Both the position numbers and the translations under genes were made by a program. Under the pieces are notes generated by a model, which saw only the letters and a program-made list of their open reading frames with translations, was not told where the DNA came from and did no database searches. Positions 9,187-31,915 of a stretch of DNA of 64,000 nucleotides are shown here, in pieces (position 1 is the first letter of the stretch; every line of letters begins with the position of its first letter). Origin of the DNA: Thalia democratica (lineage: Eukaryota); assembly GCA_965202585.1 (NCBI GenBank), contig OZ241832.1:61380001-61444000 (forward strand), given 5' to 3'.

Positions 9187-10445
9187 TCCTAAAGTTATTA
9201 ACAAATATATTTTAATGAGAATGTATGGAGAAATTAATACGCTTTGTTTTATACTTATATTTAAAAAAATTTTTTTAATGTTAAGAACCAAGTTTTAGAA
9301 TTTTTAAGGCGTCTAGAAGTATTATGTTCCACACAAATTAAGAGTTTGCACAAAAAACCTAGCTATAAAAAACATAATGAAATGGCTGAAATAAAACTAT
9401 AAACCTCTAGTTGAACAGCACCAAGTTTCAAGTTAACAGAAAAAACATTTTATGCCACCTAACTAGAATTAAACAAAGTTATTTTTTTAACATTTACCAC
9501 CATGTCCTAAAAAACTAAATGTTATTTTTACCAACAACAGCCAAATTAAATTTTTCAACTAGTTTTAATATTCTGTTCTAAGATCGCCAAGGCAAAAAGT
9601 TGCAAAAGGCTAGAAACTAAATTGATACAATTTATGTTAACCTTAATACAATTGAACTTTATCAACGAAATTTAATCATTTCAACAAAATTCTCCTCCAA
9701 GTAAGCCAAGGAGAAAACCACTGCAACCAAACACAGAATTTGAATTTTTATCAACAAAATTCTCCCAATATATTCTTCATGTCTTCATCCAGACTGTCTT
9801 CACTAGACTGTTTAAATCTTAAAGTTATAAACAAATATATTTAAATGAGAATGTGTGGAGAAATTAATACGCTTTGTTTTATACTAACAAATAAAAAAAA
9901 AACTTTTAAATGTTAAAGGATTAAGTTTTAGAATTTTTAAGGCGTTTAGAAGTAATATGTTCTACACAAATTAAGAGTTTGCACAAAAACCTAGCTATAA
10001 AAAAATATAATAAAATGGCTGGAAAATTATAAACCTCTAGTTGAACAGCACCAAGTTTAAATTTAACAGAAAAAATATTTTATGTCACCTACCTAGAAGT
10101 AAACAAAATTATTTAATAATATTTACCACCATGACCTAAAAAAGCAAATGTAATTTTACCAACATCAGCCAAAATAAAATTCTTAACTAGTTGAAATATT
10201 CTGTTCTAAGATCGCCAAGGCAAAAAGTTGCAAAAGGCTAGAAACTAAATTAAATTAATACAATTGAACTTTAACCTTAATACAATTTTATTTAACTTTA
10301 TCAACGAAATTTAATCGTTTCAACAAAATTCTCCTTTAGATCAGCCAAGGAGAAACACACTGCAACCAAACACAGAATTTTTATTTTTTCAACAAAATTC
10401 TCCCAATATGTTCTTCATATCTTCATCCAGACTGTCTTCACCGCT
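9187..10445. repeat. Approximately 630-bp tandem duplication covering the FCP1 stop codon and 3' UTR
   Basis: 9187-9810 aligns colinearly with 9817-10445. For example, GGAGAAATTAATACGCTTTGTTTTATACT and CTAAGATCGCCAAGGCAAAAAGTTGCAAAAGGCTAGAAACTAAATT each occur twice. Confidence 0.92.
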
Positions 10446-13400
10446 CGATGATGAATCTTGATCAACCGACATGTTCGAACCTGAACTCGAAATTATTTTC
10501 TCATCACCGTAATCCTCCTGTTCCTCCTGATCCGACTCCTCGTTTTCGGGTTGGACACTCCTGATTTCAGGTCGCTTTTTGGGTTTTTTGGGGATTCCAG
10601 GCAAGCTCGACCCGCTCACCAAGCGCCTCTTGTGCTGGCTGCAATTAATTAAAGTTTTTTATTAAATGTTGAGATAGAAAAATTTTTAATTTTATTTCAT
10701 CTGGCTGCAAATTGTTTTTATACGATATAATTTACAATGCTTAACTATGAGATATAAATATAATTACAACAAAACTAACTAAGTTCTTCAATAAGTTATA
10801 TGGTTTGAATTAAAACTTTAAACTGTACTTTGAAACCAATAAGTATATTAAATTTTCTATCAATGTTAATCTAAATACTTATTATCTTTTTTACAATAAA
10901 CAAGCTTTCTAATCCATTTTTTCACTCTCCCTGTATATCAAATTTAAGTTAACAATCAAAAAATGGCCAACCCCGCAATTAAAATGACAAGCAACTAAGT
11001 TTATATGATAAAATGACAATAACCACCTGTCGAAACCAACTTTTTTACGCGCGTCGCTTAAACATTTACAAAACAAGTTTGTTTTTTTAATACTAGAAGC
11101 ACGTCACAAATATCTGCGCAAAACACTCTACAACATTCGCTTTTTAGATAAATTTATCGAGTGTTCACCACGACATAACAATGTAAAAATTGTTCAAATG
11201 TTTTTATTGATATTAGTTCAAAATTCCAGGTTATTCAGTGATTTTTGTTCAAAATTTCAAGTTTTTCAGTTATTTTTGTTCAAAATTCCAGGTTTTCTAG
11301 AGATTTTTATTCAAAATTTCAGGTTTTTTAGTGATTTTTGTCCAAAATTCTAGGTTTTTTAGTGGTTTTGGTTCGAAATTCAGGTTTTTAAATTATTTTT
11401 GTTTAAGTTTTAGAATTATTTTTGTTCAATATTCCAGGTTTTTCAGAGATTTTTGTTCAAAATTCCATGTTTTTTAGTGGTTTTGGTTCAAAAAAATTCA
11501 GGTTTTTAAATTATTTTTGTTCAAAATTCCAGGTTTTTCAGTGGTTTTTATTCAAAATTCCAGGATTTTCATTAATTTTTGTTCAAAATTCCAGGTTTTC
11601 TAGTGATTTTTGTTCAAAATTCCAGGTTTTCTAGAGATTTTTGTTCAAAATTTCAGGTTTTCTAGAGATTTTTATTCAAAATTCCAGGTTTTTGTCAAAA
11701 TTTCTCAAATTCCAGGTTTTTTGGCAAATCTGTTATACAAACCCTGATATTCACGAAAATAACCGACTCTCTTATGAATTTCTCCTTCCCGCCCCAAAAT
11801 ATTTACAAAACAACCGACTCTCTTATGAATTTCTCCTTCCCGCCCCAAAATATTTACAAAACAACCGACTCTCTTATGAATTTCTCCTTCCCGCCCAATA
11901 TGTTTACAAAACAACCAACTCTCTTATGAATTTCTCCTTCCCGCCCCAAATATTCACAAAACAACCAACTCTCTTATGAATTTCTCCTTCCCGCCCCAAA
12001 TATTCACAAAACAACCAACTCTCTTATGAATTTCTCCTTCCCGCCCCAAATATTCACAAAACAACCAACTCTCTTATGAATTTCTCCTTCCCGCCCCAAA
12101 TATTCACAAAACAACCAACTCTCTTATGAATTTCTCCTTCCCGCCCCAAATGTTTACAAAACAACCAACTCTCTTATGAATTTCTCCTTCCCACCCAATA
12201 TGTTTACAAAACAACCAACTCTCTTATGAATTTCTCCTTCCCACCCAATATGTTTACAAAACAACCAACTCTCTTATGAATTTCACCTTCCCACCCAATA
12301 TGTTTACAAAACAACCAACTCTCTTATGAATTTCTCCTTCCCGCCCAAAATATTTACAAAACAACCAACTCTCTTATAAATTTCTCCTTCCCACCCAATA
12401 TGTTTACAAAACAACCAACTCTCTTATGAATTTCACCTTCCCACCCAATATGTTTACAAAACAACCAACTCTCTTATGAATTTCTCCTTCCCACCCAAGA
12501 TGTTTACAAAACAACCGACTCTCTTATGAATTTCTCCTTCCCGCCCCAAATATTTACAAAACAACCAACTCTCTTATAAATTTCTCCTTCCCGCCCCAAA
12601 TATTTACAAAACAACCAACTCTCTTATGAATTTCTCCTTCCCGCCCCAAATATTTACAAAACAACCAACTCTCTTATGAATTTCTCCTTCCCACCCAATA
12701 TGTTTACAAAACAACCAACTCTCTTATGAATTTCACCTTCCCACCCAATATGTTTACAAAACAACCAACTCTCTTATGAATTTCTCCTTCCCGCCCCAAA
12801 TATTTACAAAACAACCAACTCTCTTATGAATTTCTCCTTCCCGCCCAAAATATTTACAAAACAACCAACTCTCTTATGAATTTCTCCTTCCCACCCAATA
12901 TGTTTACAAAACAACCAACTCTCTTATGAATTTCTCCTTCCCGCCCCAAATATTCACAAAACAACCAACTCTCTTATGAATTTCTCCTTCCCACCCAAGA
13001 TGTTTACAAAACAACCGACTCTCTTATGAATTTCTCCTTCCCGCCCCAAATATTTACAAAACAACCAACTCTCTTATAAATTTCTCCTTCCCGCCCCAAA
13101 TATTTACAAAACAACCAACTCTCTTATGAATTTCTCCTTCCCGCCCCAAATATTTACAAAACAACCAACTCTCTTATGAATTTCTCCTTCCCGCCCCAAA
13201 TGTTTACAAAACAACCAACTCTCTTATAAATTTCTCCTTCCCACCCAATATGTTTACAAAACAACCAACTCTCTTATGAATTTCTCCTTCCCACCCAAGA
13301 TGTTTACAAAACAACCGACTCTCTTATGAATTTCTCCTTCCCGCCCCAAATATTTACAAAACAACCAACTCTCTTATAAATTTCTCCTTCCCACCCAATA

Positions 13401-16400
13401 TGTTTACAAAACAACCAACTCTCTTATGAATTTCTCCTTCCCACCCAATATGTTTACAAAACAACCAACTCCCTTATGAATTTCTCCTTCCTGCCCCAAT
13501 ATATTTACAAAACAACCAACTCTCTTATGAATTTCTCCTTCCCGCCCAAAATATTTACAAAACAACCAACTCTCTTATGAATTTCTCCTTCCCGCCCCAT
13601 ATGTTTACAAAACAACCAACTCTCTTATGAATTTCTCCTTCCCGCCCAAAATATTTACAAAACAACCAACTCTCTTATGAATTTCTCCTTCCCGCCCAAA
13701 ATATTTACAAAACAACCAACTCTCTAATGAATTTCTCCTTCCCGCCCAATATGTTTACAAAACAACCAACTCTCTTATGAATTTCTCCTTCCCACCCAAT
13801 ATGTTTACAAAACAACCAACTCTCTAATGAATTTCTCCTTCCCGCCCAGAATGTTGCTCCCGAACTCCTCCCCACTGCTCTCGCTGTCTTCCTCGTACTG
13901 AGCCCTCATCTCCGGCGGCATCGCCAGCATCATCCTCTGCTTCCTCTCCTCCTCCGTTTCCTCCTCGAAATCCTCCCCTTCTTCAGATGAGGAGTTTGAG
14001 GAATCGTCCGAGAGTCCCTGGAGTGAAATTTTTGGTAAAAATATAGTGGATTTGTGTGACTGTGTACTTTTTACTTTATAGATCACAACAAAACTTCTAG
14101 ACTTAATTATGAGAAGAATGATCAATTCAAAATTAATTTTTAATATAACAGCTCAATATAACAATATCAAAAAATATTTTTTTGCTAATAACAAAGATCT
14201 TAACTAAACAACTTTGTCAGAATATGTATTGACAATAATTTATTAGATGTGTTATTAATTTTTTAAAATTCTGACTTCTATTTTTTCAGTATTCTTTTTT
14301 TTACTATATGAAGTGTGTAAATGGTACAATAATACAACGTGTGTAAATTTTAAACAAAGCAAGTACTTTGCGGATCGTTGTTAAAACAAAATAAAATATG
14401 TTGATTTGACAAGCACAAAAAATGTTGATTTTTAATAAAGGCTAGTTTAATGCCTACAGTTTATTAGGTTAGTTTTTTATAGTAAATTTCAATAGCAAAT
14501 TAATACCAGACATTGATGTTGTTTTAATAATAGTTTATTAAAAGTTTACTGACGACGGATTATAAATCTGAAAACGTTTTTAACTTGTGCGATATGCAAA
14601 AAGTTTGTAGATTTTAAAAAACTATCTTTAGAATTTTTCTATCTGTTGATGATGTAGAAAAATCACAAATAAAAAACTGACTGTGTCGTGGACTTATTTA
14701 AGAACTTTAAAATAAATCTTGTCTGTTATTTTAAGACGAATGTTTACCCTGAAAGTAACACAAAAACAAATCAAATAAATTTTAATTTGAATTTAACACA
14801 AGCGATTTTGATAATTGTTAATTTGGTCGTCAATAAATTGCGGTTATTCTTATATAAATTAAAACCAGTAGAAGTTATGTCTACAACCTTTTAAACCAGC
14901 GGTTCTTAACCTCGGTTAAATTTACCCCTGGAGCTAAATTCCCTTGCTTTAAAGAGAATTTTTCTTTATCACAAACTGTGTAACTAAATATGTATACATG
15001 GTATTTTTTATTTAAAATTCAGTATTTAACTGCTTTTTTTTGAAGTTTAATAAACTCTTTATATATTACGATTTTTTTATATTTGATGAGCTTTAAGTTC
15101 CAATGATTCTTTTTTTTTCTCAAAATTATACACTATTTTGTATTTTGAGGGTATATTTAGTCATAACCTTCCAAAAAGGCCAAAAAGGGGTAAACAAGAA
15201 AAAAAGTTTTTAAACTAACATTTACATAACTTGTAATAAAGACAAATTTACCCCCCTAAAACAACAGAATACACCCCCAGGGGTAAATTTACCCTGGGTT
15301 AAGGATCACTGACCTCTAAACAAATGTTGATCTAAGCTGAGATAAGTGATATAAAAGCTATGAAAATAAAAACAATTATTTTTCACTCACTAACACAACA
15401 ATCATCAACAATTTGAGAAAGAATTACTTTTTACCAAACTTACGTCTAAAAAAGAACAAACAAGCTTTTTTTACTCCCAAACATTATTTCTTTAAAATTA
15501 ATCTAAACTTATTTAACAATCTTTTTTGAAACTAACGTCTATTTCCGCCATCATAGCTGCCATACCTTGTTTGTCAGCCAAAAATTTATCCAACATTCTG
15601 CCTTCGTTATCCGACTTTTTCTCTTCTTCTTGCTTCTTCTCTTTCGCTGTAAGTTTATTTTGTTTGTGTGAAAAAAAATCACGGATCACAAAAAATATGA
15701 CCTGTTTTGGAAATTTCTATCCAATTTTTACGCTAAAGAGAAACAGTAACATTACAGCAACACGGTACTGACATTTAAACCCACATTCCTATTTACTAAA
15801 ATTTTAAACATATACAACCTTTGAAAAGATAAATAGAAAACTAACTCAAAAAACCACCCCCTGACCCATTTCACCCAAACGTGTTTCAGAAAGTACTTTT
15901 TATAACTAATTAAAACTTGATAGTTCATTTAAATATAAACAATTAGTATTCTATCTTTAACCAATCAATCAACAAAATCGGCGAAAGTCTGCAGAACAAG
16001 TCCGGACTTTCGTTTGCCGTGAGACAAGCTCAAATTTAACAAAAGGGTTGATCATGCCAATTCGATCATCAGACCACAAGTTTCGGTCTCAGTCTACCGA
16101 AACTTGTGGTCTGATGATCGAATTGGCATGATCAACCCTTTTGTTAAATTTAACCAATCAAATATGAGCAGTACTTATTTGAGCCGGTTTATATTAAAAT
16201 AAACTCATATTACTGTATTTTCACCTTAAATACTTTGTGCAAACAGACCAATATGAACTTAGAAATCATTAAAAATTATTTTATAAATGTTTATTATTCA
16301 ATATTTAAAAATAGCGTCTAATTAAGTTTATAGAATTTTATATATATTAATAAAACCTTTATCATTGTCTGTGGAGTCCTCGTCTTGTGACTTAATTTCT

Positions 16401-19400
16401 TTCGGTTTCAATTTCTTCACCTTAAAATTGTTTTCTGGTTCTTTCTGCCACCTGGTGGTTAAAATTAAAAAATATTTTTCCAAGGTATTTTATGCTGATT
16501 TAAGATTGAAATAACTATTTTAAACTTAAAGAATAAAGATGTGCAAGCTAAATATTTTATTCACAACTGGGTTTCAGTGACAAAAAATTGCGACCTCTTC
16601 AGGTTAAATAAAATACTAAACTGCACATAACAATGCTGCTTATTAAGTTAACACAAATAACTACAAAATTAAAGAATAAAAGCCATCTCTTAAAAGTTGA
16701 TTAATCTCAACTGTAGAGTATTAATTTGGCAGAAAAAAGCAAAATAAGCAAAATCAGCGAGAAAAATAGTTTTTAGCTTGTGTTTTTTTTTAGAAAAAAG
16801 TAAATTGCATTATTTTATGATTAAAAAAATCTAGTTGTGCATACTACAACTTAACTTAAATAAATATTTGAATAAAAATTAGTATTTAAGTAACAATAAA
16901 TCATTTTGTTGACAACTAAACTAGCTTTCCATTTGATTCACAACAAACTTAGGAATAATATTTCATTTAAGAATTAATTAATTGTAGTTAATTTAATAAT
17001 TGATAATACTAACTTAACTAACGTTTCATTCAATTTAGAAATTTTAATAAAATTTAAAACAAAAAATAGCAATAACATTTAACGTTTAATCACATTTTCA
17101 GAGGCATTTCTAATTAACTTTTTTTTCCTAAATTTAATGTGTCAAACATTCAAAAACACAATAAACACATATTAAGTTAGAGGGGTAGGTGTCAAATATG
17201 CGCAAGCAGACAAAATTGCACGAAGATACTTTTGCACAAGGGGACTAAATTGCACAAAGACACTTTTGCACAAGGGAAATTTTTGCACGGGCTAATTATT
17301 TTATTTTTATTTTTTATTAAATAGTTTTTTTTTTTTTTTTTTTTGTTTTACTATCACTGTTACCCCTAATCGTTACCCTTAGTCAGTAACTTTTTTTTTC
17401 AAACAACTTATCTTTTAGTTTTTTTCTGTTTTTTTTTTACTCTTGTGCAAAAAAGACCCTCCGTGCAAAATTGTCTTCGTTTAATTTTGTCCGCAATTTT
17501 GACCCGTTTCCAAGTTAGACAGATTTGGTACTATTTTAATTAATTAAAATAACAAAACCAATGTTTCATTACATTTCTACAGCCAGTTAAAACTAACTCT
17601 TTAATTAATTTTTAACTTAAATATTTTGAATATGAAACAGACATAAACCTGACAAAAAAATTATTTTAATGTTAGTTATTAAACTTAAATTTATAATTAT
17701 CATAGGTAATAATTATTTAAAATATATTAACAACAAACGTTTCATTGCATTTCCACAACCACTTTTCAGTGACAATTTGGATTTTCAACTTTTTGGCGTC
17801 TTTGTGCTTCACAGTGCCTGGATTTGCATTGACACCACAAATTAAATGGGTGGTTTCTTTTGTTACCTGTTTATTAAATTATTATATTAGTTATTATGTT
17901 TTAATATATATTTGCAGATATAATACTGGATTAACATTCACACCTTAAAATTAAACGGGTCGTTTGTTTTGTTACCTGAAAAATAATAAACACTTTATAA
18001 GTTAAATCTATCTTTGATTAAATCTATTTTCATGTTGAATAGTAACAGTAAATGAGTGGTTTTTTCGTTACTTGTGGGATTATTAAACACTTTTTGTAAT
18101 ATTTAAATATACTATTTTTTTGCATATGTTTGTTTATTAACTTTAAGTTTATGTTTAACAGTAAGCAAACGATCACTGTCATGCTTGTTATTAAATTCAA
18201 CTAATTTGGCAATTATATGAGAATAAAACTAGAATATAACAAAGAATTGTCAATATGTATACTAAAATATTGCAATCAAAATGAAACTTAATAAATGTTA
18301 CCACCAACTAAATAAGCAACTAAACGGGATTTAAATATAATAAAAGATTACCAACGAAACAAATTCATATTATAAATTATAAATAAACAAATTTTTTCAT
18401 AAACATTAGCTCCCATTAGTTTAGCAACAACTCAGGTGTTACAAATTTAATAAAATAATTCAATAATACAATTAACTATATTAAATAAATAAACAAATTT
18501 TTTCATGTATATTTGCGCCAGTCAATTAAGCAATTACATTTTATATCAGCTTAACTCAAACCAATTTTCAAATATTTGTCATTTTTAATATTATTATTTT
18601 ACCACAGATTTACAATTTGAAAATCCGCTCTGCGGTGAAACTGAGTAATTGTTTATTCTCAAAAATAATAAATTATTAATTATCAATCTCCTATTAGTGG
18701 ATAGATTACTGTGTCTTATTTATTTGTTCTAAACTCTCTAGTTAAATTACATAACTTGGGTGTAACAATTCAAAAAAAAAAAAACTAATAACAGTATAAC
18801 TATTATAGATAATAAATAAACAAACCTTCTCATGAATATTAGCTACCATGAATTTAGCAATAATATAACTTAGATGTTACGGTTTAAAATATAATAAATT
18901 TTAAATAAAATAATCAAACTAACTTTCTCATGAATACTAGCTCCCATCAACTTAGCAATAGCATGACTTGGATGTTCTCCCTTCGTATTTACATCCCATT
19001 TATTTGGTACAACTCCAGTGAATGCAAGATTGCAATTCTCAAGTGTCTGTAATAATTATTGTTTATAGTATACTAAATTATTAGCAAATAACTTATTTAG
19101 TACAATTCCAGTGAAAGCAAGATTACAATTTTCTAATATCTACAGAATAATAATTGTTCGTTTATCTAGTTTTTTTTTTTTTTTTTGTTATTTTGCATAT
19201 TTGGTAACACAAAAATAATACTTTTGCAAATCTATCAATTCAGTAAAATAATTACTTTTTCATTATTATTATCATTATTATTAGTATGTACTTCGATTTT
19301 GTAGTTATTAAAACTATTCCAGAAAAAGCTACAATGCAATTAGTCATGTCTGAACTTAAAAAATATTAATATTTCACAATTCAATTATAACTAAAAATTG

Positions 19401-22400
19401 GAAAAACAATAATTTTATTTCTGGAAATTCTTTGTTTTACTCTAAAAAATCGATACAGAAGTCGTTATAGTAACTTGTTGTGGAATATATAATTTAAATT
19501 GAATTTATTACTATAGTAGATGAGCCTGTTATTTTATAGAGATAAATAATTTATGACGATACTAATTTAAACTACGTTATATAGTAAATGATATAAAAAA
19601 ATAATTTTAAACAGTTTACTCTATTAATTATACGTTTTTTATTTATAACATACTATTATAGTATATTTCTAAAACTATTTGTGTATCATTAAATTGAAAT
19701 ACTTTGGATATTTGTTATATACAAATGTTTCTTTATTACAACAAAAGTTTTGAAAACTCTATTTTATCATTACATAAACAAAAACTGTGTGACTAAATAT
19801 TTATATAACTATCTCTTCAACAAGAACTAATTTTTAAACTCTTAAACTTAACTTGACTCAATACTAAACAATAATAAACAAAATTAAACTTTTTTTCTGA
19901 GAAAAGGAATTATTTCGGAGACTTGAGGCATGATTTTTTTGTTTTTATTTTTGCATTTCTTGTAAGCCTTGTAATATTCTTCATGGACCTTGTTCAAAAT
20001 TCCACCCAATATGTTGAGGTAGGTGTCGTTGTCAGTTGGAACTGTTTGAAAATAATATTATACATTTAAATTATCTTAAATTCAACCCAATATGTTTAAA
20101 TAGTTGTCGTGAGGTACTGAATAGAAAAAAATTATATATTAATTATTTATTATCCAAAATTCTACCGAATATGTTTAAATAATTGTCATTATCAACTGGA
20201 ACTGTTTGGAAATAAAGATTTTGTTTATTTATATATTCTACAGTAACAGTATTATAATATTTAATAAAACTCTCAAATCGTCCTTAGGTATGTTAACTAT
20301 TTTGCTGAAGAAGAATATGAAAGTACTCCAAACAATATGAGAATAAAATAAGAACTAAGCAGATTTTTTTGAAGTATAGTTGTTTTTATATATAGCATTT
20401 ATATATTTTATTATTTTTCAAAACTAAACCAAACATATTTAGGTTACTGTCGTTGTCAAATTGAACTGATGTGTAACAAAATTATATTTTTTATTTACTC
20501 AATTTTAACATATCTTAAAGTTCGACCCAATGTGTTTAGATATTTTTGTTACCCATTTGTTTAGATATTTTGCAAGTATAGGAGTGAAACATTGTTTTGA
20601 TTGTAATAAACTGTTGAAATAAATATTGGATATAAATCTCCTTAAAGACATTTAAGTCGAGAACTTTAAATTGTTTGATTTAAAACAAGTTACATTATTA
20701 TATTTTTGTTACCATAAAAACACTAATAACATCATTATTATTTATTTTACTTTTAAAAAATAAATTTAGATTGGTCTTTTTGGTACACAAACCATTAGAC
20801 AAATAGTTTTCGTGAACAATCATTCTAATAATTGCTTATCAAAATATTTTTTTTAAGCATATTTGGGCTTTTGTTTCTGTAAATGAAAATAATTTTTCAA
20901 ATAAACTGTGGTGTGTGCATTGCAAATAAAATAATTGTACATGTAGCTACAAAATAACAAAACTAATATTATTTTTCAACTTTTTTAAACCATCAGAAAA
21001 ATCTGACACACTCATAAGGATAACTTTTTGTGATACCTTTAGTTTCTTCTTTTTTATTTTTGCAAGAATCATTTTTCTTTGTTACGTCATCACTTTTATT
21101 ATTTACGTCACTGTTTTTATCCGTGTCTTTTTTGTCTCCATCAACGTTTGTTGTAGAAGTGACTTCGCATTCATCTATATAAATTAAATTGTGCAAAACA
21201 TATAATAATACTGTGCAAAAAAAGTTATAAAATTAAACATAAAGTGTGTGCAAAGTAAAATATATCAACCAGTATTTTCAAATCTGTGCTAGTTAGCATA
21301 ATATTTTTGTTTTTATTTAACTTAAACTTGAAAAAAAAATCAAGTTACAATATAAACATTAGTTTTGAATATTCATTGAACTGTTTTTATCGGAAATACT
21401 ACTTTTCAATAAAATTGCATATGCTTGTCATGCCGTTAAAAAGCGCATGCATTTTAAGTTTATAAAATAAAATGTGTTAGCAGCACGAAACTCTATTTTA
21501 AAATTAAATTAAAAGCCTTTCGTCAGAAGTAAAGCACAGGACTAATGCATCATTTTGACAATTTTAAATATAATTCAGAATTTTAGTAAAATATATTTTA
21601 ATATTCAGTTTAAATAAATCGATATTTTTAAAGAAAATTTATCTGAGTCATGTTTTTACCATAAATAACTCAATGTTTTAAAAAGCCCTACTAATCATTT
21701 TGTTCGTTACATTAATATTATTTGATTAGAGCGTATAATTAAATTAGCTTTTTTTTTTTGATGAAGCTTAATTAAAATAGGCTTGAAAAATTTTATAATA
21801 TAAATTTATAGAGAATAAAAAAATAAACTGGTGAAATAAGAAAAGATTTAGAATGACAAGCATTGTTACAAATGCTTAAAATTGAGTTAACCTACTTACA
21901 CACATTAAAATTAGAGTGAGAATTTTTTTTGTTATATCTTTTCTAGCATATACAAGAGTAAACGAAATACTTAGTAAGAAAATGTAATACTAAAACACTT
22001 AAATTAAAAACTAATGTTTTCTATATTTTAAGTTTTTGTCAAACTAAATCTAAAATCTGCTATCATCCAATATAAATTTTAAGACAGGCTAAAGTTGTAA
22101 ACAAGTATAAAATTGATCAGTCATTAAAAAAAATAAACTAACATGCAGAAAAATCAATTTTTAAATATAGAACAAAACAAGCATAAATTTTTTCATGCTT
22201 GTCCCTTAAAATGTAAAAATTCAATAGTTTTCATTGTATTTTCTATGTAAAATATATGTTGTTAAAAATAAACCATTTTTTGAGAGTTTAGGAGATGTTG
22301 CTTCATCGGTGCTGTCATCTAACTTCCTTTTCTTACCTTTAGTTTCCTAAAATAAATAACATTACATATTTATTTGTTTAAAATAAATATCATTTAAATA

Positions 22401-25400
22401 CAACGTTAGCAACAAAAAAATTTTTATTTATTCAAAAAAAAAAGTTTTTATCATTAAAAGTGACTAATTAAACAACAAGACTATTGGTAGTTCAAATGAT
22501 TAATACTTTTTTTCAAACATTTTATTTGAAGTACAATTAAAATATTTAAACAAAAAAACCAACTACCTTCTGCTTGAGAATTTTATCTGGATCATTTATG
22601 TCTCCGGAACCTACAAAAAATTACTATTTTTCATTAAAATAACTAGTTTAAAATTTGTAGAGAAGTTAATAATTATACTTTTTTTAAGTATGTAAGAAAT
22701 AAAATAAATTCAAAAAAAAGGTAAACTTTATTTTGTAAAGCAGTTCAGAGTTTTAAGAATTTGCCTTTTTTTTTTTGTTTTAAGCATAAATTTATTGAAT
22801 ACAATATAAAATAATTCATATTTAGCCTAATTGAAAATACTCTTCAATAAACTTAAGTACGTTGTTAAATTTAGTTCTTTTGATCAGAAATAAAAACAAA
22901 TTGTATTTATAAATATTTAAAAAACAATTAGAATTACGTTTTCTTCTTTTAATTTTTTTTTCTAACTTTATGAACTAAATGAGAAATTTAATCAAAATTT
23001 TTTTTTTAAGAGCTTGAAATACACATTTCAAAAGAAAAGAGTAGGGAAATAGGAACTTTTAAAAATAGTAATAATCTTTTAAGATTTTTGTTGTTAATTT
23101 TAAATGTCAATTTGAAACTAAATGGAATGTTTTATTTTTTAGTGATAACTTTTGATATTTTTTAAACTCACAAAACTTGGTACTGAAAAAATTGAGTAAC
23201 AAATTAATTAATCAAAAAGCATTAATAAATAACTACTTTTAAAAACTAAAAAATAACAACATAATAGGATAAATATGAAAATTTTTTAACTTTGATGACA
23301 TTATTTTTAAAATAACCAGGGAAATATGAATATTTTTAACTTTCATGGCATTATTTTCCAACTAAACTGGGAAATATGAATACTTTTTAACTCTGATGAC
23401 ATTATTTTTGAACTTAACTGAGAAATGTAAATATTTTAACTTTAAACTATAATATTTTCAAATTAACCAGGAAAATAAAAATATTTTTTAACTTTGATGA
23501 CATTATTAATAAACTAACCAGGGAAATATGAATATTTTTTAACTTTGATGACATTATTTTTGAACTTAACTGGGAAATGTAAACATTTTTACTTTAAATG
23601 ATAATATTTTCAAAATAACCAGGAAAATAAAAATATTTTTAAATTTTAATGACTTTATTTTCAAACTAACCAGGGAAATATGAATACTTTTTAACTTTGA
23701 TGACATTATTTTCGAATCCCTTCCACACGTCATTTCTGTCATCAATCATACAAACCATCGATGTTCCATTGGGAAATATGTGACTGAAAATTAATTCATT
23801 TAAATTTATTTATTATCATACATACCATCGATTTACTATTTGGAAATATGTGACTGAAAAATAATTAATTGATAATAATATTAATATAAATCACAGCATT
23901 GAAGTTCCATTTAGAATTATGTGGTTAAAAAATAATGTATACAAATTAAATTTATTTACTAAAATACTTGCACAACTCATTTATTTTTTAAATGAATCGT
24001 ATTTAATACCTAGTTCATTCTTATGGCTAAAACACATACTTTTTACTATAAATAACATTGGTCAAAAAACTCAAAATATACAAAACTCATATTTTGTTGT
24101 TACTAATCTCTGAAAAAAAACATCATCCATTATTCTTATTTTATATAAGCCAAAACATCAAATTAAATGAATAAATAATGTATAAATTATGTTTACCATA
24201 AGAAATCTTACCGCATATTAGCACTTTTGTGATTTTTATCGAAACACTCGTCTCTTGACAGGATCCGATTTCCGAACAGAGATTTGTCCGGATCGACGAT
24301 CGTTGCTATTTTTTCTGCGTAACTCCTGTAAAAAAATAATTTTTTTTTTTTTTTTTAATTTAGTAAGTTAATAGAAGTTCAAGTAGTCAGCATTTAACTA
24401 ATAATAAAAGTTAAATTTATATTGGTATATAAAAGAAAATACAGTTACACTATCGTTGCTATTTTTTCAGCGTAACTCCTATAATAAATAATTATAATGT
24501 AGAAAGTTCAACTAGTCGGTAATTGAATATTAGTATAACTTCTAGTATTTAGTAATTATAATGTGTTACGTTTATAACTGTTGTTGCTGTTTTATCAGTG
24601 TAACTCCTACAATAATTGATATAAACTCAAGTAGTTGGTATATACAATGCACTTTATTTAGAACAACCGCCGCTATTTCCACTGTGTAAGTTAATATAAA
24701 ATGATTAAAACAAGTATCATGAGATTTTGAAGTAGAAACAGCTTTGCTTATTACCTCGTTATACCGAGTTCGTTAGTCAATAGTTCCTAAAAACTTGATT
24801 TGAATTGAACCAAACTGCTTTTACAAGAGCCAAAGAATTATGCAGTTCTTAACACTTTTTTATATCATCACAATATGTTGTTTTAAATAATTGAGATCAA
24901 ACAAAAAGTCAAACTTGTTATTAAAAGTAACAGCTCATTGTGACAATAGTTTTGTTATCAAATAATTTTTACTAATTTCAAAAACAATGATTTTCATTTC
25001 ACCTGTTACCAAAAGTGACAATCATCAGCTGAAATATTTTGCTTAAAAAACACAAAAAAATCACATTAGAATTAATATTAATTAAATGAATATTTCTAAC
25101 CTGTTGCCAAAAGTGACAATCATCAGCTGAAATATATTGCTCATGTGCGTTAGAAATTCTGCGGTGTTCGGCCTCAATTTAGTGTGCATCATCTGTTTAT
25201 TGGGTGCTCCCGGTAATTTGAATGAATGGATTTCCTATAAAAAATAATTGAAATAAATTATATTTATTATGAGCATAACTTGCTTATTTAGAGCCCCTGG
25301 TAATTTGAATGAGTGTATTTGCTAAAAAGTAGTTTAAAAATTAATCAAAATATTTTTAATTATGTTATTATGTTCATCATCTGCTTATTTGGTGCCCCTG

Positions 25401-28400
25401 GTAATTCGAACGAGTGGATTTCCTATACAAATAATTGAAATTAATTATAATAATTTATATGATTATGTGCATTATTTGTTTATTCGGTGCTCCTGGTAAA
25501 TTGAACGAGTGGATTTCCTTAAAGAATTAAAAATTAATCAAAATATTCTAAATAATATTTATTGTATATATAGTTTGTTTGTAGGGCCCCTGGTAGGAAG
25601 AGTGGATCCCCTTGAAAAAAAGCTCAAATAACATAAATGTTGTGTACAATACCTTATTTTTGTTGGGTCTTGAAGCAAATAACAAAAAAAACTCTTGAAA
25701 CCATTAAAAGGTGACATCGCCACAGAATTAATTTCTTCAATTTATTTAACATGTTTACTAACCGGGCTGGCTTCAGCAATGGCATTATGGATCGGGTCTT
25801 GACTGGTGTGGATGATGGTCTGGTCCAAATCCACCAACAATATCAACTTTTCTTTCGAATGCAGGTAGTTCATCTCATCAGAGTGCATTTTCACTCCTTC
25901 CTGTTGTATTGAAATATATATTAATAAAAAAAAAATTAAATATATATTAAAAAATATAATAACAATAATATGTAAAATATTTTTATCAGTGTATCATAGA
26001 TTAATTTTAATAAACAAATTTGAAACAAACTTGAGCATTAATTTCTACATGAGGGTTGCTGGGATCCATTGAAATGTAACCAGGTCCTTTATGCACTCCC
26101 CTATTGTAAATAAACAAATATAACATAAAAACACCATACTTTACAACATGTATTTCAATACATCTTGTATTTCTTTTAAAAGTTAAATTGTATTTCCTAT
26201 ATAATATTATTAAACAAAATTTCTTTAAATGATATATAACCAGGTCCTCTATGTGTTCCTTTTTTAAAAGTTAAAGAAAATTTAAAATACAAACTGTACA
26301 ATACAGTAATATTATCAACAAAAAAATTATTTATTTAACTAGCACCAAGGAGATTAATAATAGTAATAGTTTTTTGATTGAAGTTATATGAAAACGGTAT
26401 AAATTTATAAATTTTACGAGTACACTACAATTCTTAATGTTTTTGTTTAAAACTAGAAAAAAGTCTAACACAATATTAATACTTTACCTTACTGAAAGAT
26501 AAATTACTTTTGTTTATTCTAAACAAATTTAAATTTAAAGTTGTAACTGTTACAATTTAAACCCAGCTCTTTAAAACTTTGTAGTAAATGAATTTTTATT
26601 TCACCCCACAGTATTTTGGATACTTATATTGAAACTACTTATATGAATTTTAGGAATTGATGGGTATGGTATAAATATTTTATTTCAAAAAATTCTTAAT
26701 AAAACAATGTTCTACTCTGTTTGATTTCTTTAGTTGTAATTAAATTTTTCTTTAAACAGTGTTCTACTTCTGATTTTAAATTCTACTTGCATTAGAAATT
26801 ATCATAACTGAAGATCTGTAGTAGAGTGAAACATTGTTTCACAATGGAATCTCTAAAACAAAACATTTACATCGCCTCTTAAATTTTAAACCTAACTTGA
26901 GAACTCTAATTTGTACAATTAAAGTCAATAGTATACAATAAACTTACTTTCTTAAATTTCTAGTTTAATAAATCACAATTTTAGCATTACTTACTAAATT
27001 ATTTACTAAACTTATAATTCAGATAATGAATTGATTTGTTTACTATTGATGTTTTAATTAATTTTTTTTTATAAGCACTGACGAGCTCTTTGCGCAAAAC
27101 ACTGTTTGCAGAATAAATTTTAGAAAAAATAAATAGTAGGTAGTGTTATAAATTTAAACACTAAGCTTTTTAGATATGCATTTAATAAAACTAATTCACA
27201 TAAACATACAACAAAATACTTACTTTGTTATATCTTCCGCGCAATTACAACACAACCCTTTAAACAAATTGAGATGTTTACATTCTTCAAAATCAAGGAA
27301 CTTTGCACTGAAAATATATTAGTTATTAAAAAAAAATAGTTGTTTACATTTCTCAAAATCAAGGAACTTCGCACTGAAAATATACTAGAATATTTTAAGA
27401 ATATTATAATCATATTTTTCTAATAATATAATTATTAGAATATTTATTCAATATATAAAATATATCACATACACTTAAGATAAAACAAAAGAATCAACAT
27501 GGATTGATAAACTTTTTTTAATGTTTAGTAATGCAACTCAATATATTGACTAAAGCAGATGTTAAGTAATATCTATTAACAGAATCATATTCCTATTATG
27601 AGTTTTAAATGATGTTTTTAATAAAGTAATTACACATTTTATAAATTGCCAGCAAAATCAAGGATCGATAAAAACTCAGGTAATATAATTTCTACCATAC
27701 TTTAAAATGTCTAAAAGCATGTAATTAGACTTTATAACAAAGAACTTACTAGATCAAATAGTTTTTAAAAAAATAAAGAATCTAAGAAATTTAAACAAAA
27801 TATATTTTAATTAAATGTTCCAACTACTCCAAATAAATGAGTAAAGTTTAAATTAAAATAGTGTAAAGTAGTATAAATATGTTTAAAAATTAACTTAAAA
27901 CTTATTAGTAGATTTTAGTTAGCTGCAGATTATATTATAATTATCTATAAAAAGGAACGAACACATAAACTAATTTTATATATGTCAGTTTATAATTCTG
28001 AAAAACCTTAACTAAAAAATATTATTTTTATCATATTTATTTTTCTACTCAAATTAAAGTTTTCAAAGAAAAAAAAATACAGTTTTTTAGAACATAGTTT
28101 TCAAATGCAGGTAAACTTGAAAGTCACCATTTCTTATTAGTTTCCATAAAAACATTTAGATAAAAGTAATAATTGATATTTTGTTATTTTTTTAATTATC
28201 TTCTACTTAAGTACTTATTTCATTTTTGTTTCTATCATTAACTGGTTTTTTTAGATTCTATAAAAGTACACTTGTTGTAATTACAAAACACATAGCCAAT
28301 TTTGGTGGATAGTTGACATAACATTATTATTTTTTTTGTTATTATATTATACATTGACAAAAAAATAATACAATTTCTTTAATAACAATTCTAAACATTT

Positions 28401-28786
28401 GGTTATTAAATTGTTGTTGTTAATAAGTAGTTACCATACTTTGAACAACAGTTCAGGTATGTTTGTTGTGAATGGGATATACTTATTAATAGAATTAAAT
28501 TTCAAAAAAAATAATGCAAATGTCTTTAATAAAAGTAGTACTTCAGAAATAATTGAACTATTCTACACAAAGCAACAAACCCTGGTGTAAGGGCTTGTCC
28601 AGCTTTGAAGAGCAGCTCAGTAATGCATGTGGCAAACGGTGGCTTGGCGGAGTAAATGTGCTCGCTTTTATCAAGAGCATCATTTAGCTTTCTGTACTTG
28701 AAAAACTCCGTCTTCCTGTCTATCTTGTCTCCAACTTTGACCAGCAGCTGGGTTATTCTGACTGGTTCGTTCAAATTTAAGTTCAT
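10389..28786 (-). CDS. CTDP1: RNA polymerase II subunit A C-terminal domain phosphatase (FCP1/CTDP1), 17 coding exons, about 722 aa
   Basis: Exons in transcription order: 28581-28786, 27224-27307, 26031-26100, 25763-25900, 25101-25234, 24212-24325, 23671-23783, 22567-22610, 22274-22346, 21037-21174, 19890-20041, 18924-19046, 17739-17866, 16357-16451, 15537-15646, 13821-14017, 10389-10638. All are GT-AG, phases are consistent and the total is 2169 nt. Hallmark motifs: CKHLNLFKGLCCNCA; KLILLVDLDQTIIHT (DxDxT catalytic motif); HTKLRP..FL; RILSRDEC; MVCMIDDRNDVW; GSGDINDP; DNDTYLNILGGILNKVHEEYY; a BRCT domain (NCNLAFTGVVP...TTHLI...IVTEKWLWKC..TWQK); acidic tail ending DEDMKNILGEFC*. The exact exon 16 donor and exon 17 acceptor are ambiguous by a few nt. 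Confidence 0.96.
11205..11732. repeat. Degenerate array of an approximately 30-bp unit (TTCAAAATTCCAGGTTTTTCAGTGATTTTTG), related to hAT-like MITE subterminal repeats
   Basis: About 17 degenerate units, ending in TTGGCAAATCTG. The same AAATTCCAGGTTTT motifs precede the GTGGCAACCCTG end of the elements finishing at 31915 and 38165. Confidence 0.8.
11745..13852. repeat. 50-bp minisatellite, about 41-42 copies; unit = FCP1 exon 16 3' end plus splice donor
   Basis: The plus-strand unit CCGCCCCAAATATTTACAAAACAACCAACTCTCTTATGAATTTCTCCTTC repeats with period 50 (occasionally 51). The last copy is continuous with the coding exon (NILGGKEKFIR). Confidence 0.97.
14897..15311. mobile_element. hAT-like MITE
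   Basis: Imperfect TIRs CAGCGGTTCTTAACCT ... GGGTTAAGGATCACTG with subterminal TAAATTTACCCC motifs. No clean 8-bp TSD. Confidence 0.6.
15956..16161. mobile_element. Short insertion with a 13-bp target-site duplication containing a perfect 56-bp inverted repeat
   Basis: TTTAACCAATCAA occurs at 15956-15968 and 16149-16161. Arms 16032-16087 and 16096-16151 are exact reverse complements around an 8-nt loop. Confidence 0.75.
17182..17511. mobile_element. MITE with 8-bp TSD and GG termini (Merlin-like)
   Basis: AAGTTAGA flanks both ends (17174-17181 and 17512-17519). The ends are imperfectly inverted, with repeated TTGCAC/GTGCAA subterminal motifs. The superfamily is inferred from the 8-bp TSD and GG termini. 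Confidence 0.7.
20554..20699 (+). mobile_element. 5'-truncated non-LTR retroposon-like insert, copy 1
   Basis: 14-bp TSD ATATTTTTGTTACC (20540-20553 and 20700-20713). The segment 20623-20698 is identical to 36402-36477. Confidence 0.65.
23265..23720. repeat. Degenerate tandem array, period about 51 bp, 8-9 copies; unit = FCP1 exon 7 3' end plus donor
   Basis: Unit AACTAACCAGGGAAATATGAATACTTTTTAACTTTGATGACATTATTTTC. Copies lie at about 23317, 23368, 23419, 23467, 23519, 23571 and 23619, with the real junction at 23671. Confidence 0.9.
25255..25620. repeat. Four degenerate tandem copies of the FCP1 exon 5 acceptor plus 5' end
   Basis: The motif CCCCTGGTAATTTGAACGAGTGGATTTCCT recurs at about 90-100 bp spacing upstream of the real exon start (25234). 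Confidence 0.9.
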
Positions 28787-31538: not shown

Positions 31539-31915
31539 CAAGGATGCCACTTGTTTTACAAATTTTTTTTCAGGTTTTTCAAATTTCTTCCAGGTTTTTA
31601 AAAGTACACATTTTTGGGTCTACTTTTAGATTAAAGTTAAATTTAAAGTAAGAAACTGTGCTAAATAGTATAAAAATATTGAAAAGATACTGTAAAGCTA
31701 CTTAAAATGTGTTTTTTAAGAAAAAAATTTTTGGTAACGACTTAAGATGTTAAAGTTCTTAAAAATTCCAGGTTTCTCCAGGTTTTTTAGTCAAAATTCC
31801 AGGTTTTTCCAGGTTTTTTTCAAAATTTCTTAAATTCCAGGTTTTTCCAGGTGTTTTTTGCCTAAATTGTCAAATTCCAGGTTTTTCCAGAATTCCAAGT
31901 AAAGTGGCAACCCTG
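31539..31915. mobile_element. hAT-like MITE (CAGGG(T/A)TGCCAC-type ends)
   Basis: Ends CAAGGATGCCAC ... GTGGCAACCCTG with AAATTCCAGGTTTTT subterminal repeats. A further left-end-like CAGGGTGGCCAC lies at 31089, and a second truncated copy lies at 37833-38165. Confidence 0.7.

Follow-up and report, generated by a model that had tools for sequence, protein, structure and literature searches.

A 42-unit minisatellite across the last 5' splice junction of FCP1 in Thalia democratica is most likely a young, neutral mirage array

We analyzed a 64,000-nucleotide stretch of the genome of Thalia democratica (GenBank assembly GCA_965202585.1, contig OZ241832.1, positions 61,380,001 to 61,444,000), referred to below as the window and numbered from its first letter. 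The gene FCP1 runs along its minus strand, and in this gene the boundary between the penultimate exon and the last intron is repeated in tandem 42 times. It is very probable, in our judgment, that this array is a young, lineage-specific and most likely neutral minisatellite lying across the 5' splice junction of the penultimate exon, of the kind known in amphioxus as a mirage. The original prediction for this DNA had seen in the repeats a set of donor decoys that might poison splicing or bind U1, with a neutral young variable number tandem repeat (VNTR) tolerated by splicing as its fallback. The data that follow speak against the first of these readings, with the first donor used in all assembled RNA contigs, donor columns no better kept than the rest of the unit, and a relative that does without the array. 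They fit the second, with first-donor use, variation within the donor columns, the array-less relative and published precedents all in its favor.

The identity of the host gene, as proposed in the original prediction, is borne out by its domains. Four colinear minus-strand exons match the Pfam family NIF (PF03031) at profile positions 2-18, 32-63, 64-94 and 108-134, a later exon matches BRCT (PF00533, 6.8e-10), and the best solved-structure matches are to Fcp1 (3EF0, 3EF1 and 4XPZ, 5e-6). A NIF phosphatase domain followed by BRCT is the architecture of FCP1/CTDP1, and the gene call holds. The coordinates of its last exons rest on X5, a run from the same organism that behaves as RNA, its contigs lying on exons only and containing exon-exon joints. 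Relatives were available as metagenome contigs, of which L002 and L003 come from two independent TARA Oceans samples and L001 from a closer relative. The features of this end of the gene are as follows, in the order of transcription.

15537..15646, minus strand: exon before the penultimate one (exon 15 of the original prediction), with donor GAC/GTTAGT (15537/15536); an X5 contig lies on 15536-15648, and its loose ends match the upstream exon end and the exon start at 14017.
13821..14017, minus strand: penultimate coding exon (exon 16 of the original prediction), 197 nt, acidic and serine-rich; X5 contigs cover 13821-14015, with loose ends at 14017 and 13821.
13815..13823, minus strand: 5' splice site in use, AGA/GTTGGT, cut at 13821/13820, phase 2; seen in X5 contigs, with the donor conserved in L002 and L003.
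11747..13852, minus strand: 50-bp minisatellite of 42 units, found with Tandem Repeats Finder and supported by the unit table, the core match and word depth in the DNA run X3.
13805..13807, minus strand: TAA stop, in frame, within the intronic portion of unit 1, from translation of the exon plus the units up to each donor.
10639..13820, minus strand: last intron, 3182 nt, GT..AG, phase 2, from X5 contigs.
11200..11693, minus strand: second minisatellite of the last intron, 31 bp x 16.2, 79% matches, not exon-derived (Tandem Repeats Finder).
10666..10725, minus strand: 60-nt insertion in the alignment with L001, carrying at 10701-10713 a copy of the last-exon acceptor, aatttgcagccag (aattgcag/CCAG).
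10389..10638, minus strand: last coding exon, 82 codons plus stop, ending ...SLDEDMKNILGEFC before the stop; an X5 loose end matches 10609-10637, and the exon is conserved in two relatives.

Tandem Repeats Finder describes the array as a minus-strand repeat at window 11747-13852 with a period of 50, 42.0 copies, 94% matches, 0% indels and a score of 3504, and the 36-nt core of the unit is matched 41 times at up to three mismatches, always within the array, against a chance expectation of 0. Each unit joins the last 32 nt of the penultimate exon to the first 18 nt of the last intron, just as had been predicted. Unit 1 (13852-13803, minus strand) reads ATTCTGGGCGGGAAGGAGAAATTCATTAGAGA on the exonic side and GTTGGTTGTTTTGTAAAC on the intronic side; its exonic part is the end of the exon itself, and it holds the true junction. 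Units 2-42 are intronic copies of exon end and donor, which amounts to 41 pseudo-donors over 2.1 kb. The original prediction had counted about 41 copies of a nearly identical live donor at 11745-13852. The array and the closeness of its copies stand, with the count becoming 42 once the true junction is included and the limits 11747-13852, although the donor AGAGA/GTTGGT is kept in only 35 of the 42 units. In these 35 the sequence from -5 to +18 is the same as in unit 1, so that they are live donors in form, whereas six units (11, 17, 27, 40, 41 and 42) carry GTCGGT, with +3 changed, and one (unit 8) carries AGGGA/GTTGGT.

The variants are arranged in an orderly way inside the array, and its edges are clean. 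Runs of identical adjacent units occur at 35-38 (BBBB), 14-15 (DD) and 33-34 (AA), and blocks of variants recur about 10 units apart, units 15-18 reading D-K-C-S and units 25-28 D-K-C-J. Mean identity between units is as high at lags of 10-11 (0.945 and 0.942) as at a lag of 1 (0.942), in keeping with the higher-order blocks described in the original prediction, and divergence is greatest toward the ends, in units 1, 3 and 40-42. The array shows the concerted evolution typical of minisatellites, with a homogenised core, divergent edges and repeated variant blocks. Its sense strand is also strongly G-skewed (G 33%, C 4.5%), with 84 runs of at least three G that could favor R-loops during transcription; no canonical G-quadruplex with loops of up to 7 was found in the array.

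We compared the sequencing runs with exons 15 and 16 and the first three units, and read the joint between the penultimate and the last exon from the loose ends of contigs. In two 135-nt X5 contigs the match breaks off at 13821 and resumes with window 10637-10609. These contigs represent two haplotypes, one identical to the window and the other with five differences, and they show that the pre-mRNA is spliced from the first donor (13821/13820) to the acceptor at 10639/10638. X5 is small, with 47 million letters and a word depth on exons of ∼14-17. No X5 depth was seen on 13700-13802, which covers units 2 and 3, in assembled k-mer contigs that drop rare forms, and no X5 contig containing 13803-13820 was found at this limited sensitivity; the depth in the bin 13771-13841 is the amount expected from its 21 exonic nucleotides alone. 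In a marine metatranscriptome, X1, contigs 90-95% alike carry the same exon 15/16 junction. Further donors verified by X5 contigs are GAC/GTTAGT (15537/15536) and AAG/GTTTTA. Altogether 11 donors were read in FCP1 (window 13815-28581), three of them confirmed by RNA contigs and eight read from frame and homology. Ten of the 11 begin with GTT (GTTAGT, GTTTGT, GTTGGT, GTTTTA, GTTTAA and GTTAGA) and the remaining one is GTAAGA, so the 5' splice-site consensus of this gene is unusual but consistent. The genome is very AT-rich, with ∼24% G+C.

Translation of the exon together with the units up to a given later donor always ends ...FIRELVVL and a stop, the TAA falling four codons past the split codon, where the original prediction had placed it. 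The predicted truncation before the last exon is likewise upheld by translation, and the use of a later donor would cost FCP1 its last 82 residues. The exon so defined would be 247 to 2250 nt long, and the TAA would precede the last junction by 34 nt with donor 2 and by 84-2037 nt with donors 3-42. Two other roles for the units were considered and rejected. Use as cassette exons finds no polypyrimidine tract before any AG (pyrimidine share 0.2-0.4), and a coding role is at odds with a 50-nt period that is not a multiple of three and with the few open reading frames of at least 45 amino acids inside the array. When the end of the exon and five units were folded together as RNA, z was -0.99, with nothing that would mask or expose particular donors, and a search of the whole window against Rfam returned 0 families.

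The copies themselves show no sign of selection. Columns -3 to +8 around the donor hold 8 minor-base counts over 11 columns, against 23 over the 35 remaining unit columns when four hypervariable columns at the unit edges are excluded, and the donor columns are no better kept than the others. L002 and L003 carry an orthologous exon that aligns without gaps and the same A/GTTGGTT donor, yet their orthologous intron is 248 nt long and lacks the array; Tandem Repeats Finder detected no tandem repeat in the L002 intron. On this comparison the array is lineage-specific. When JGI metagenome contigs were scanned with the unit core as an exact pattern, there were 0 matches, and a protein-guided scan of the same contigs with the exon peptide returned 458 pattern matches of which 0 were confirmed. 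Word-indexed protein searches with the exon-16 peptide and an open reading frame at the array edge, aimed at array-bearing contigs from other individuals or species, found no homologue.

There are published counterparts to this arrangement. Minisatellites whose first unit lies across an exon-intron boundary are known in human F7, IFI6 (6-16), CBS, LMNB2 and PDGF (PMC1557585). The VNTR of F7 intron 7 is a 37-bp minisatellite with its first unit over the exon 7/IVS7 boundary (Borensztajn et al. 2006, PMC1557585), and there 50 constructs showed that the identical pseudo-donors are functional and yet the most upstream alone is used, even when the downstream ones are raised to a consensus value of 91, a behavior that the authors explained by 5'-to-3' scanning, to which exon definition contributes (PMC1557585). 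The rule was established for alleles of five to nine repeats, with experiments on five identical sites (PMC1557585). As in F7, the first unit in FCP1 is the authentic junction, identical donors lie downstream, and the assembled RNA uses only the most upstream; the authentic donor is non-consensus in both genes (UGG/gugggu in F7, AGA/GTTGGT in FCP1). The two differ in scale, with 5-9 units of 37 bp and 4 exonic nucleotides in F7 against 42 units of 50 bp and 32 exonic nucleotides in FCP1, and in the nature of the evidence, constructs having demonstrated both pseudo-site function and the scanning rule in F7, while in FCP1 the silence of the copies is suggested by assembled RNA. The donors of IFI6, CBS intron 13, LMNB2 and PDGF each recur 10-25 times in the intron that follows, and in LMNB2 and PDGF the authentic donor alone is used (PMC1557585).

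In the amphioxus mirages, exon-intron boundaries of Adh3, globin, troponin C and PGBD5 are duplicated in tandem (PMC3087553, PMC3902484). The mirages leave normal splicing undisturbed, differ in length from one haplotype or lineage to another, and evolve in concert, with units diverging at the edges (PMC3087553, PMC3902484). The FCP1 array resembles them in being made of minisatellite-like copies of a junction in the adjoining intron, with divergent units at its edges, although published mirages have few units (3-6 in the globin genes) against the 42 of FCP1, and the FCP1 array sits in a very AT-rich genome. In its unit make-up, its outermost authentic junction, its minisatellite dynamics and its lineage-specificity the array is an exon-intron-boundary minisatellite, with copies that are probably silent, and it differs in size, in organism and in its GTT-type donor. 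A quite different comparison is with poison exons, as in the genes for SR proteins, where autoregulatory splicing is coupled to nonsense-mediated decay (NMD); these show deep conservation, and RNA data reveal their products. The array shares with them an alternative splice choice that would bring a premature stop, but unlike them it is absent in a relative, and its product is not seen in the X5 contigs.

How the array may have arisen is suggested by the sequences at its borders. Two short stretches of similar sequence, spaced 50 nt apart, could have given rise to the first duplication: AACATTCTGGG, with which the unit begins in the exon, and AATATCAGGG in the intron; the latter now follows the last unit and in the ancestral sequence would have stood 50 nt beyond the former. 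Slippage or unequal exchange would then have raised the number of copies to 42, both by single units and, to judge from the variant pattern, by blocks of about 10, and the growth of the array would have lengthened the intron from a few hundred bases to 3.2 kb. On the F7 model, the 41 downstream copies would stay silent, with the spliceosome choosing whichever suitable donor comes first past the exon's 3' splice site; as for F7 intron 7, 5'-to-3' scanning or exon definition may be the basis of this choice, and the ever longer exons that later donors define would also disfavor them. The array may persist since the true junction comes first and the copies lie inside the intron, a geometry that splicing appears to tolerate. 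With the first donor winning and the geometry tolerated, the array would need no function.

Several points weigh against a neutral and silent array. Neutrality is read here from the pattern of variation. Later donors may have some minor use, especially in transcripts degraded by NMD, since assembled contigs drop rare isoforms. The array donor is the weakest of the 11 in the gene, scoring 5.0 against 5.8-12.2 for the other ten, whose high scores arise partly by construction, the weight matrix having been built from them; among the 1048 GT sites of the gene it stands at the 91st percentile. A donor that is comparatively weak makes some leakage plausible. IFI6 and CBS use their first two pseudo-sites constitutively (PMC1557585), which in FCP1 would truncate the protein, and in the assembled RNA of FCP1 no such use is seen. 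Finally, L001 spans only the last 187 nt of the intron, so that the age of the array is bounded solely by the more distant relative.

Were later donors used to an extent that mattered, the array could act as a rheostat, in which transcripts from these donors run into the TAA of unit 1 and are lost to NMD or yield FCP1 minus 82 residues, the copy number setting the dose. We regard this as very unlikely. It would be in keeping with the 35 units that retain the used donor, identical from -5 to +18, but conservation is no higher at the donor columns than in the rest of the unit, and changes there are already present in 7 units. Every later donor would indeed bring a premature stop, at least 84 nt before the last junction for donors 3-42, yet no X5 RNA contig enters units 2-3. 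The comparative weakness of the authentic donor and the use of the first two pseudo-sites in human IFI6 and CBS (PMC1557585) also favor it. Against it, the F7 pseudo-sites do not compete with the upstream donor even at a consensus value of 91 (PMC1557585). In addition, the array is missing in a relative with the same FCP1 donor, and the further junction repeats in FCP1, described below, point to a mutational process.

A role in recruiting U1 is highly improbable. The 41 extra putative U1 sites would, on this account, help the weak donor or suppress premature cleavage and polyadenylation in the AT-rich last intron. U1 is an established safeguard against premature polyadenylation, 35 units repeat the donor sequence, and eight AATAAA/ATTAAA hexamers lie downstream of the array (11676-10663) with 0 inside it. 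Most of these hexamers, however, are in or beside the equally lineage-specific 31-bp array, so that the problem would be as young as its cure, in the relative a 248-nt intron with one donor suffices, and the donor columns carry no conservation signal. Least credible is an artefact of size, with a real repeat but a 42-unit count that is wrong or differs between haplotypes: minisatellites are hard to assemble, one amphioxus mirage having been mis-assembled in the draft genome (PMC3087553), and only k-mer contigs were available here, none spanning the array, but the internal variants are orderly, the array edges are clean, and the summed word depth in the DNA run X3, 1715-2687 on units 1-3 compared with 43-47 for flanking single-copy sequence, points to tens of copies, a word depth being no copy number and X3 possibly the assembly's own sample.

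The case for a neutral mirage minisatellite is set in a wider context by the rest of the gene. Besides the 42-copy array, FCP1 contains three further, older tandem repeats that span splice junctions.

23271-23716: donor-side junction repeat, about 8.7 decaying 51-bp copies with 75% matches, made up of the last part of the exon that ends at 23671 and its CTG/GTTAGT donor.
25238-25545: acceptor-side repeat; the exon that starts at 25234 is preceded by three 95-bp copies, which contain its acceptor and first codons.
19995-20215: acceptor-side repeat; the exon that starts near 20043 is preceded by two 79-bp copies, which contain its acceptor and first codons.

The first of these is an older donor-side junction repeat of the same gene. 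Repeats at three more FCP1 junctions, together with the copy of the last-exon acceptor in the 60-nt insertion, speak for a general process rather than a device specific to this gene. Some eleven minisatellites lie within the 64-kb window, and in the last intron the 42-copy array accounts for 66% of the length and the 31-bp array at 11200-11693 for 15.5%, the two together making up 82%. The motif CCTGGAATTT is common to the 31-40-bp minisatellites at 11200-11693 and 31762-31890, which belong to a dispersed family of short arrays, one of them adjoining the FCP1 donor array.

Two further elements were noted in the neighboring introns. Just upstream of the acceptor of the penultimate exon, at 14055-14125, lies a very high-copy dispersed element, with a word depth in X3 of up to 10775 against ∼45 in the flanks, which RNA contigs of other transcripts also match. 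A near-perfect long palindrome at ∼16000-16180 (ggttgatcatgccaattcgatcatcagaccacaagtttcggt... and its reverse complement) has the look of a miniature inverted-repeat element.

The last exon, which every later donor would forfeit, is conserved in two marine-metagenome protein fragments at 81% and 69% identity. It has no Pfam match and no significant solved-structure match, and a Pfam search of the C-terminal exons of FCP1 likewise returned nothing. Its ending, ...DEDMKNILGEFC, may resemble the human C terminus, the acidic helix that binds TFIIF/RAP74. The codon across the last intron is GA+C/T and encodes Asp; at 10638, the first base of the last exon, the X5 RNA consensus has T where the window has C, a synonymous difference (GAC/GAT) that is probably an allele.

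A more far-reaching possibility, which we consider unlikely, is that splice junctions in this genome are a preferred substrate for tandem duplication through a mutational mechanism linked to the junction itself. The FCP1 array might then be the young, expanding stage of a genome-wide lengthening of introns, and could titrate U1 or leak stop-carrying isoforms according to its length. The G-skewed, R-loop-prone sense strand would fit such a junction-linked mechanism.

Taken alone, a young and most likely neutral mirage minisatellite in FCP1 carries little weight; it is one large natural case, in an essential gene, of the rule that the first donor wins, and it shows an intron of some hundreds of bases brought to 3.2 kb by two minisatellites. 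More widely, it would serve as a data point on how common splice-junction repeats are across the genome of this organism.

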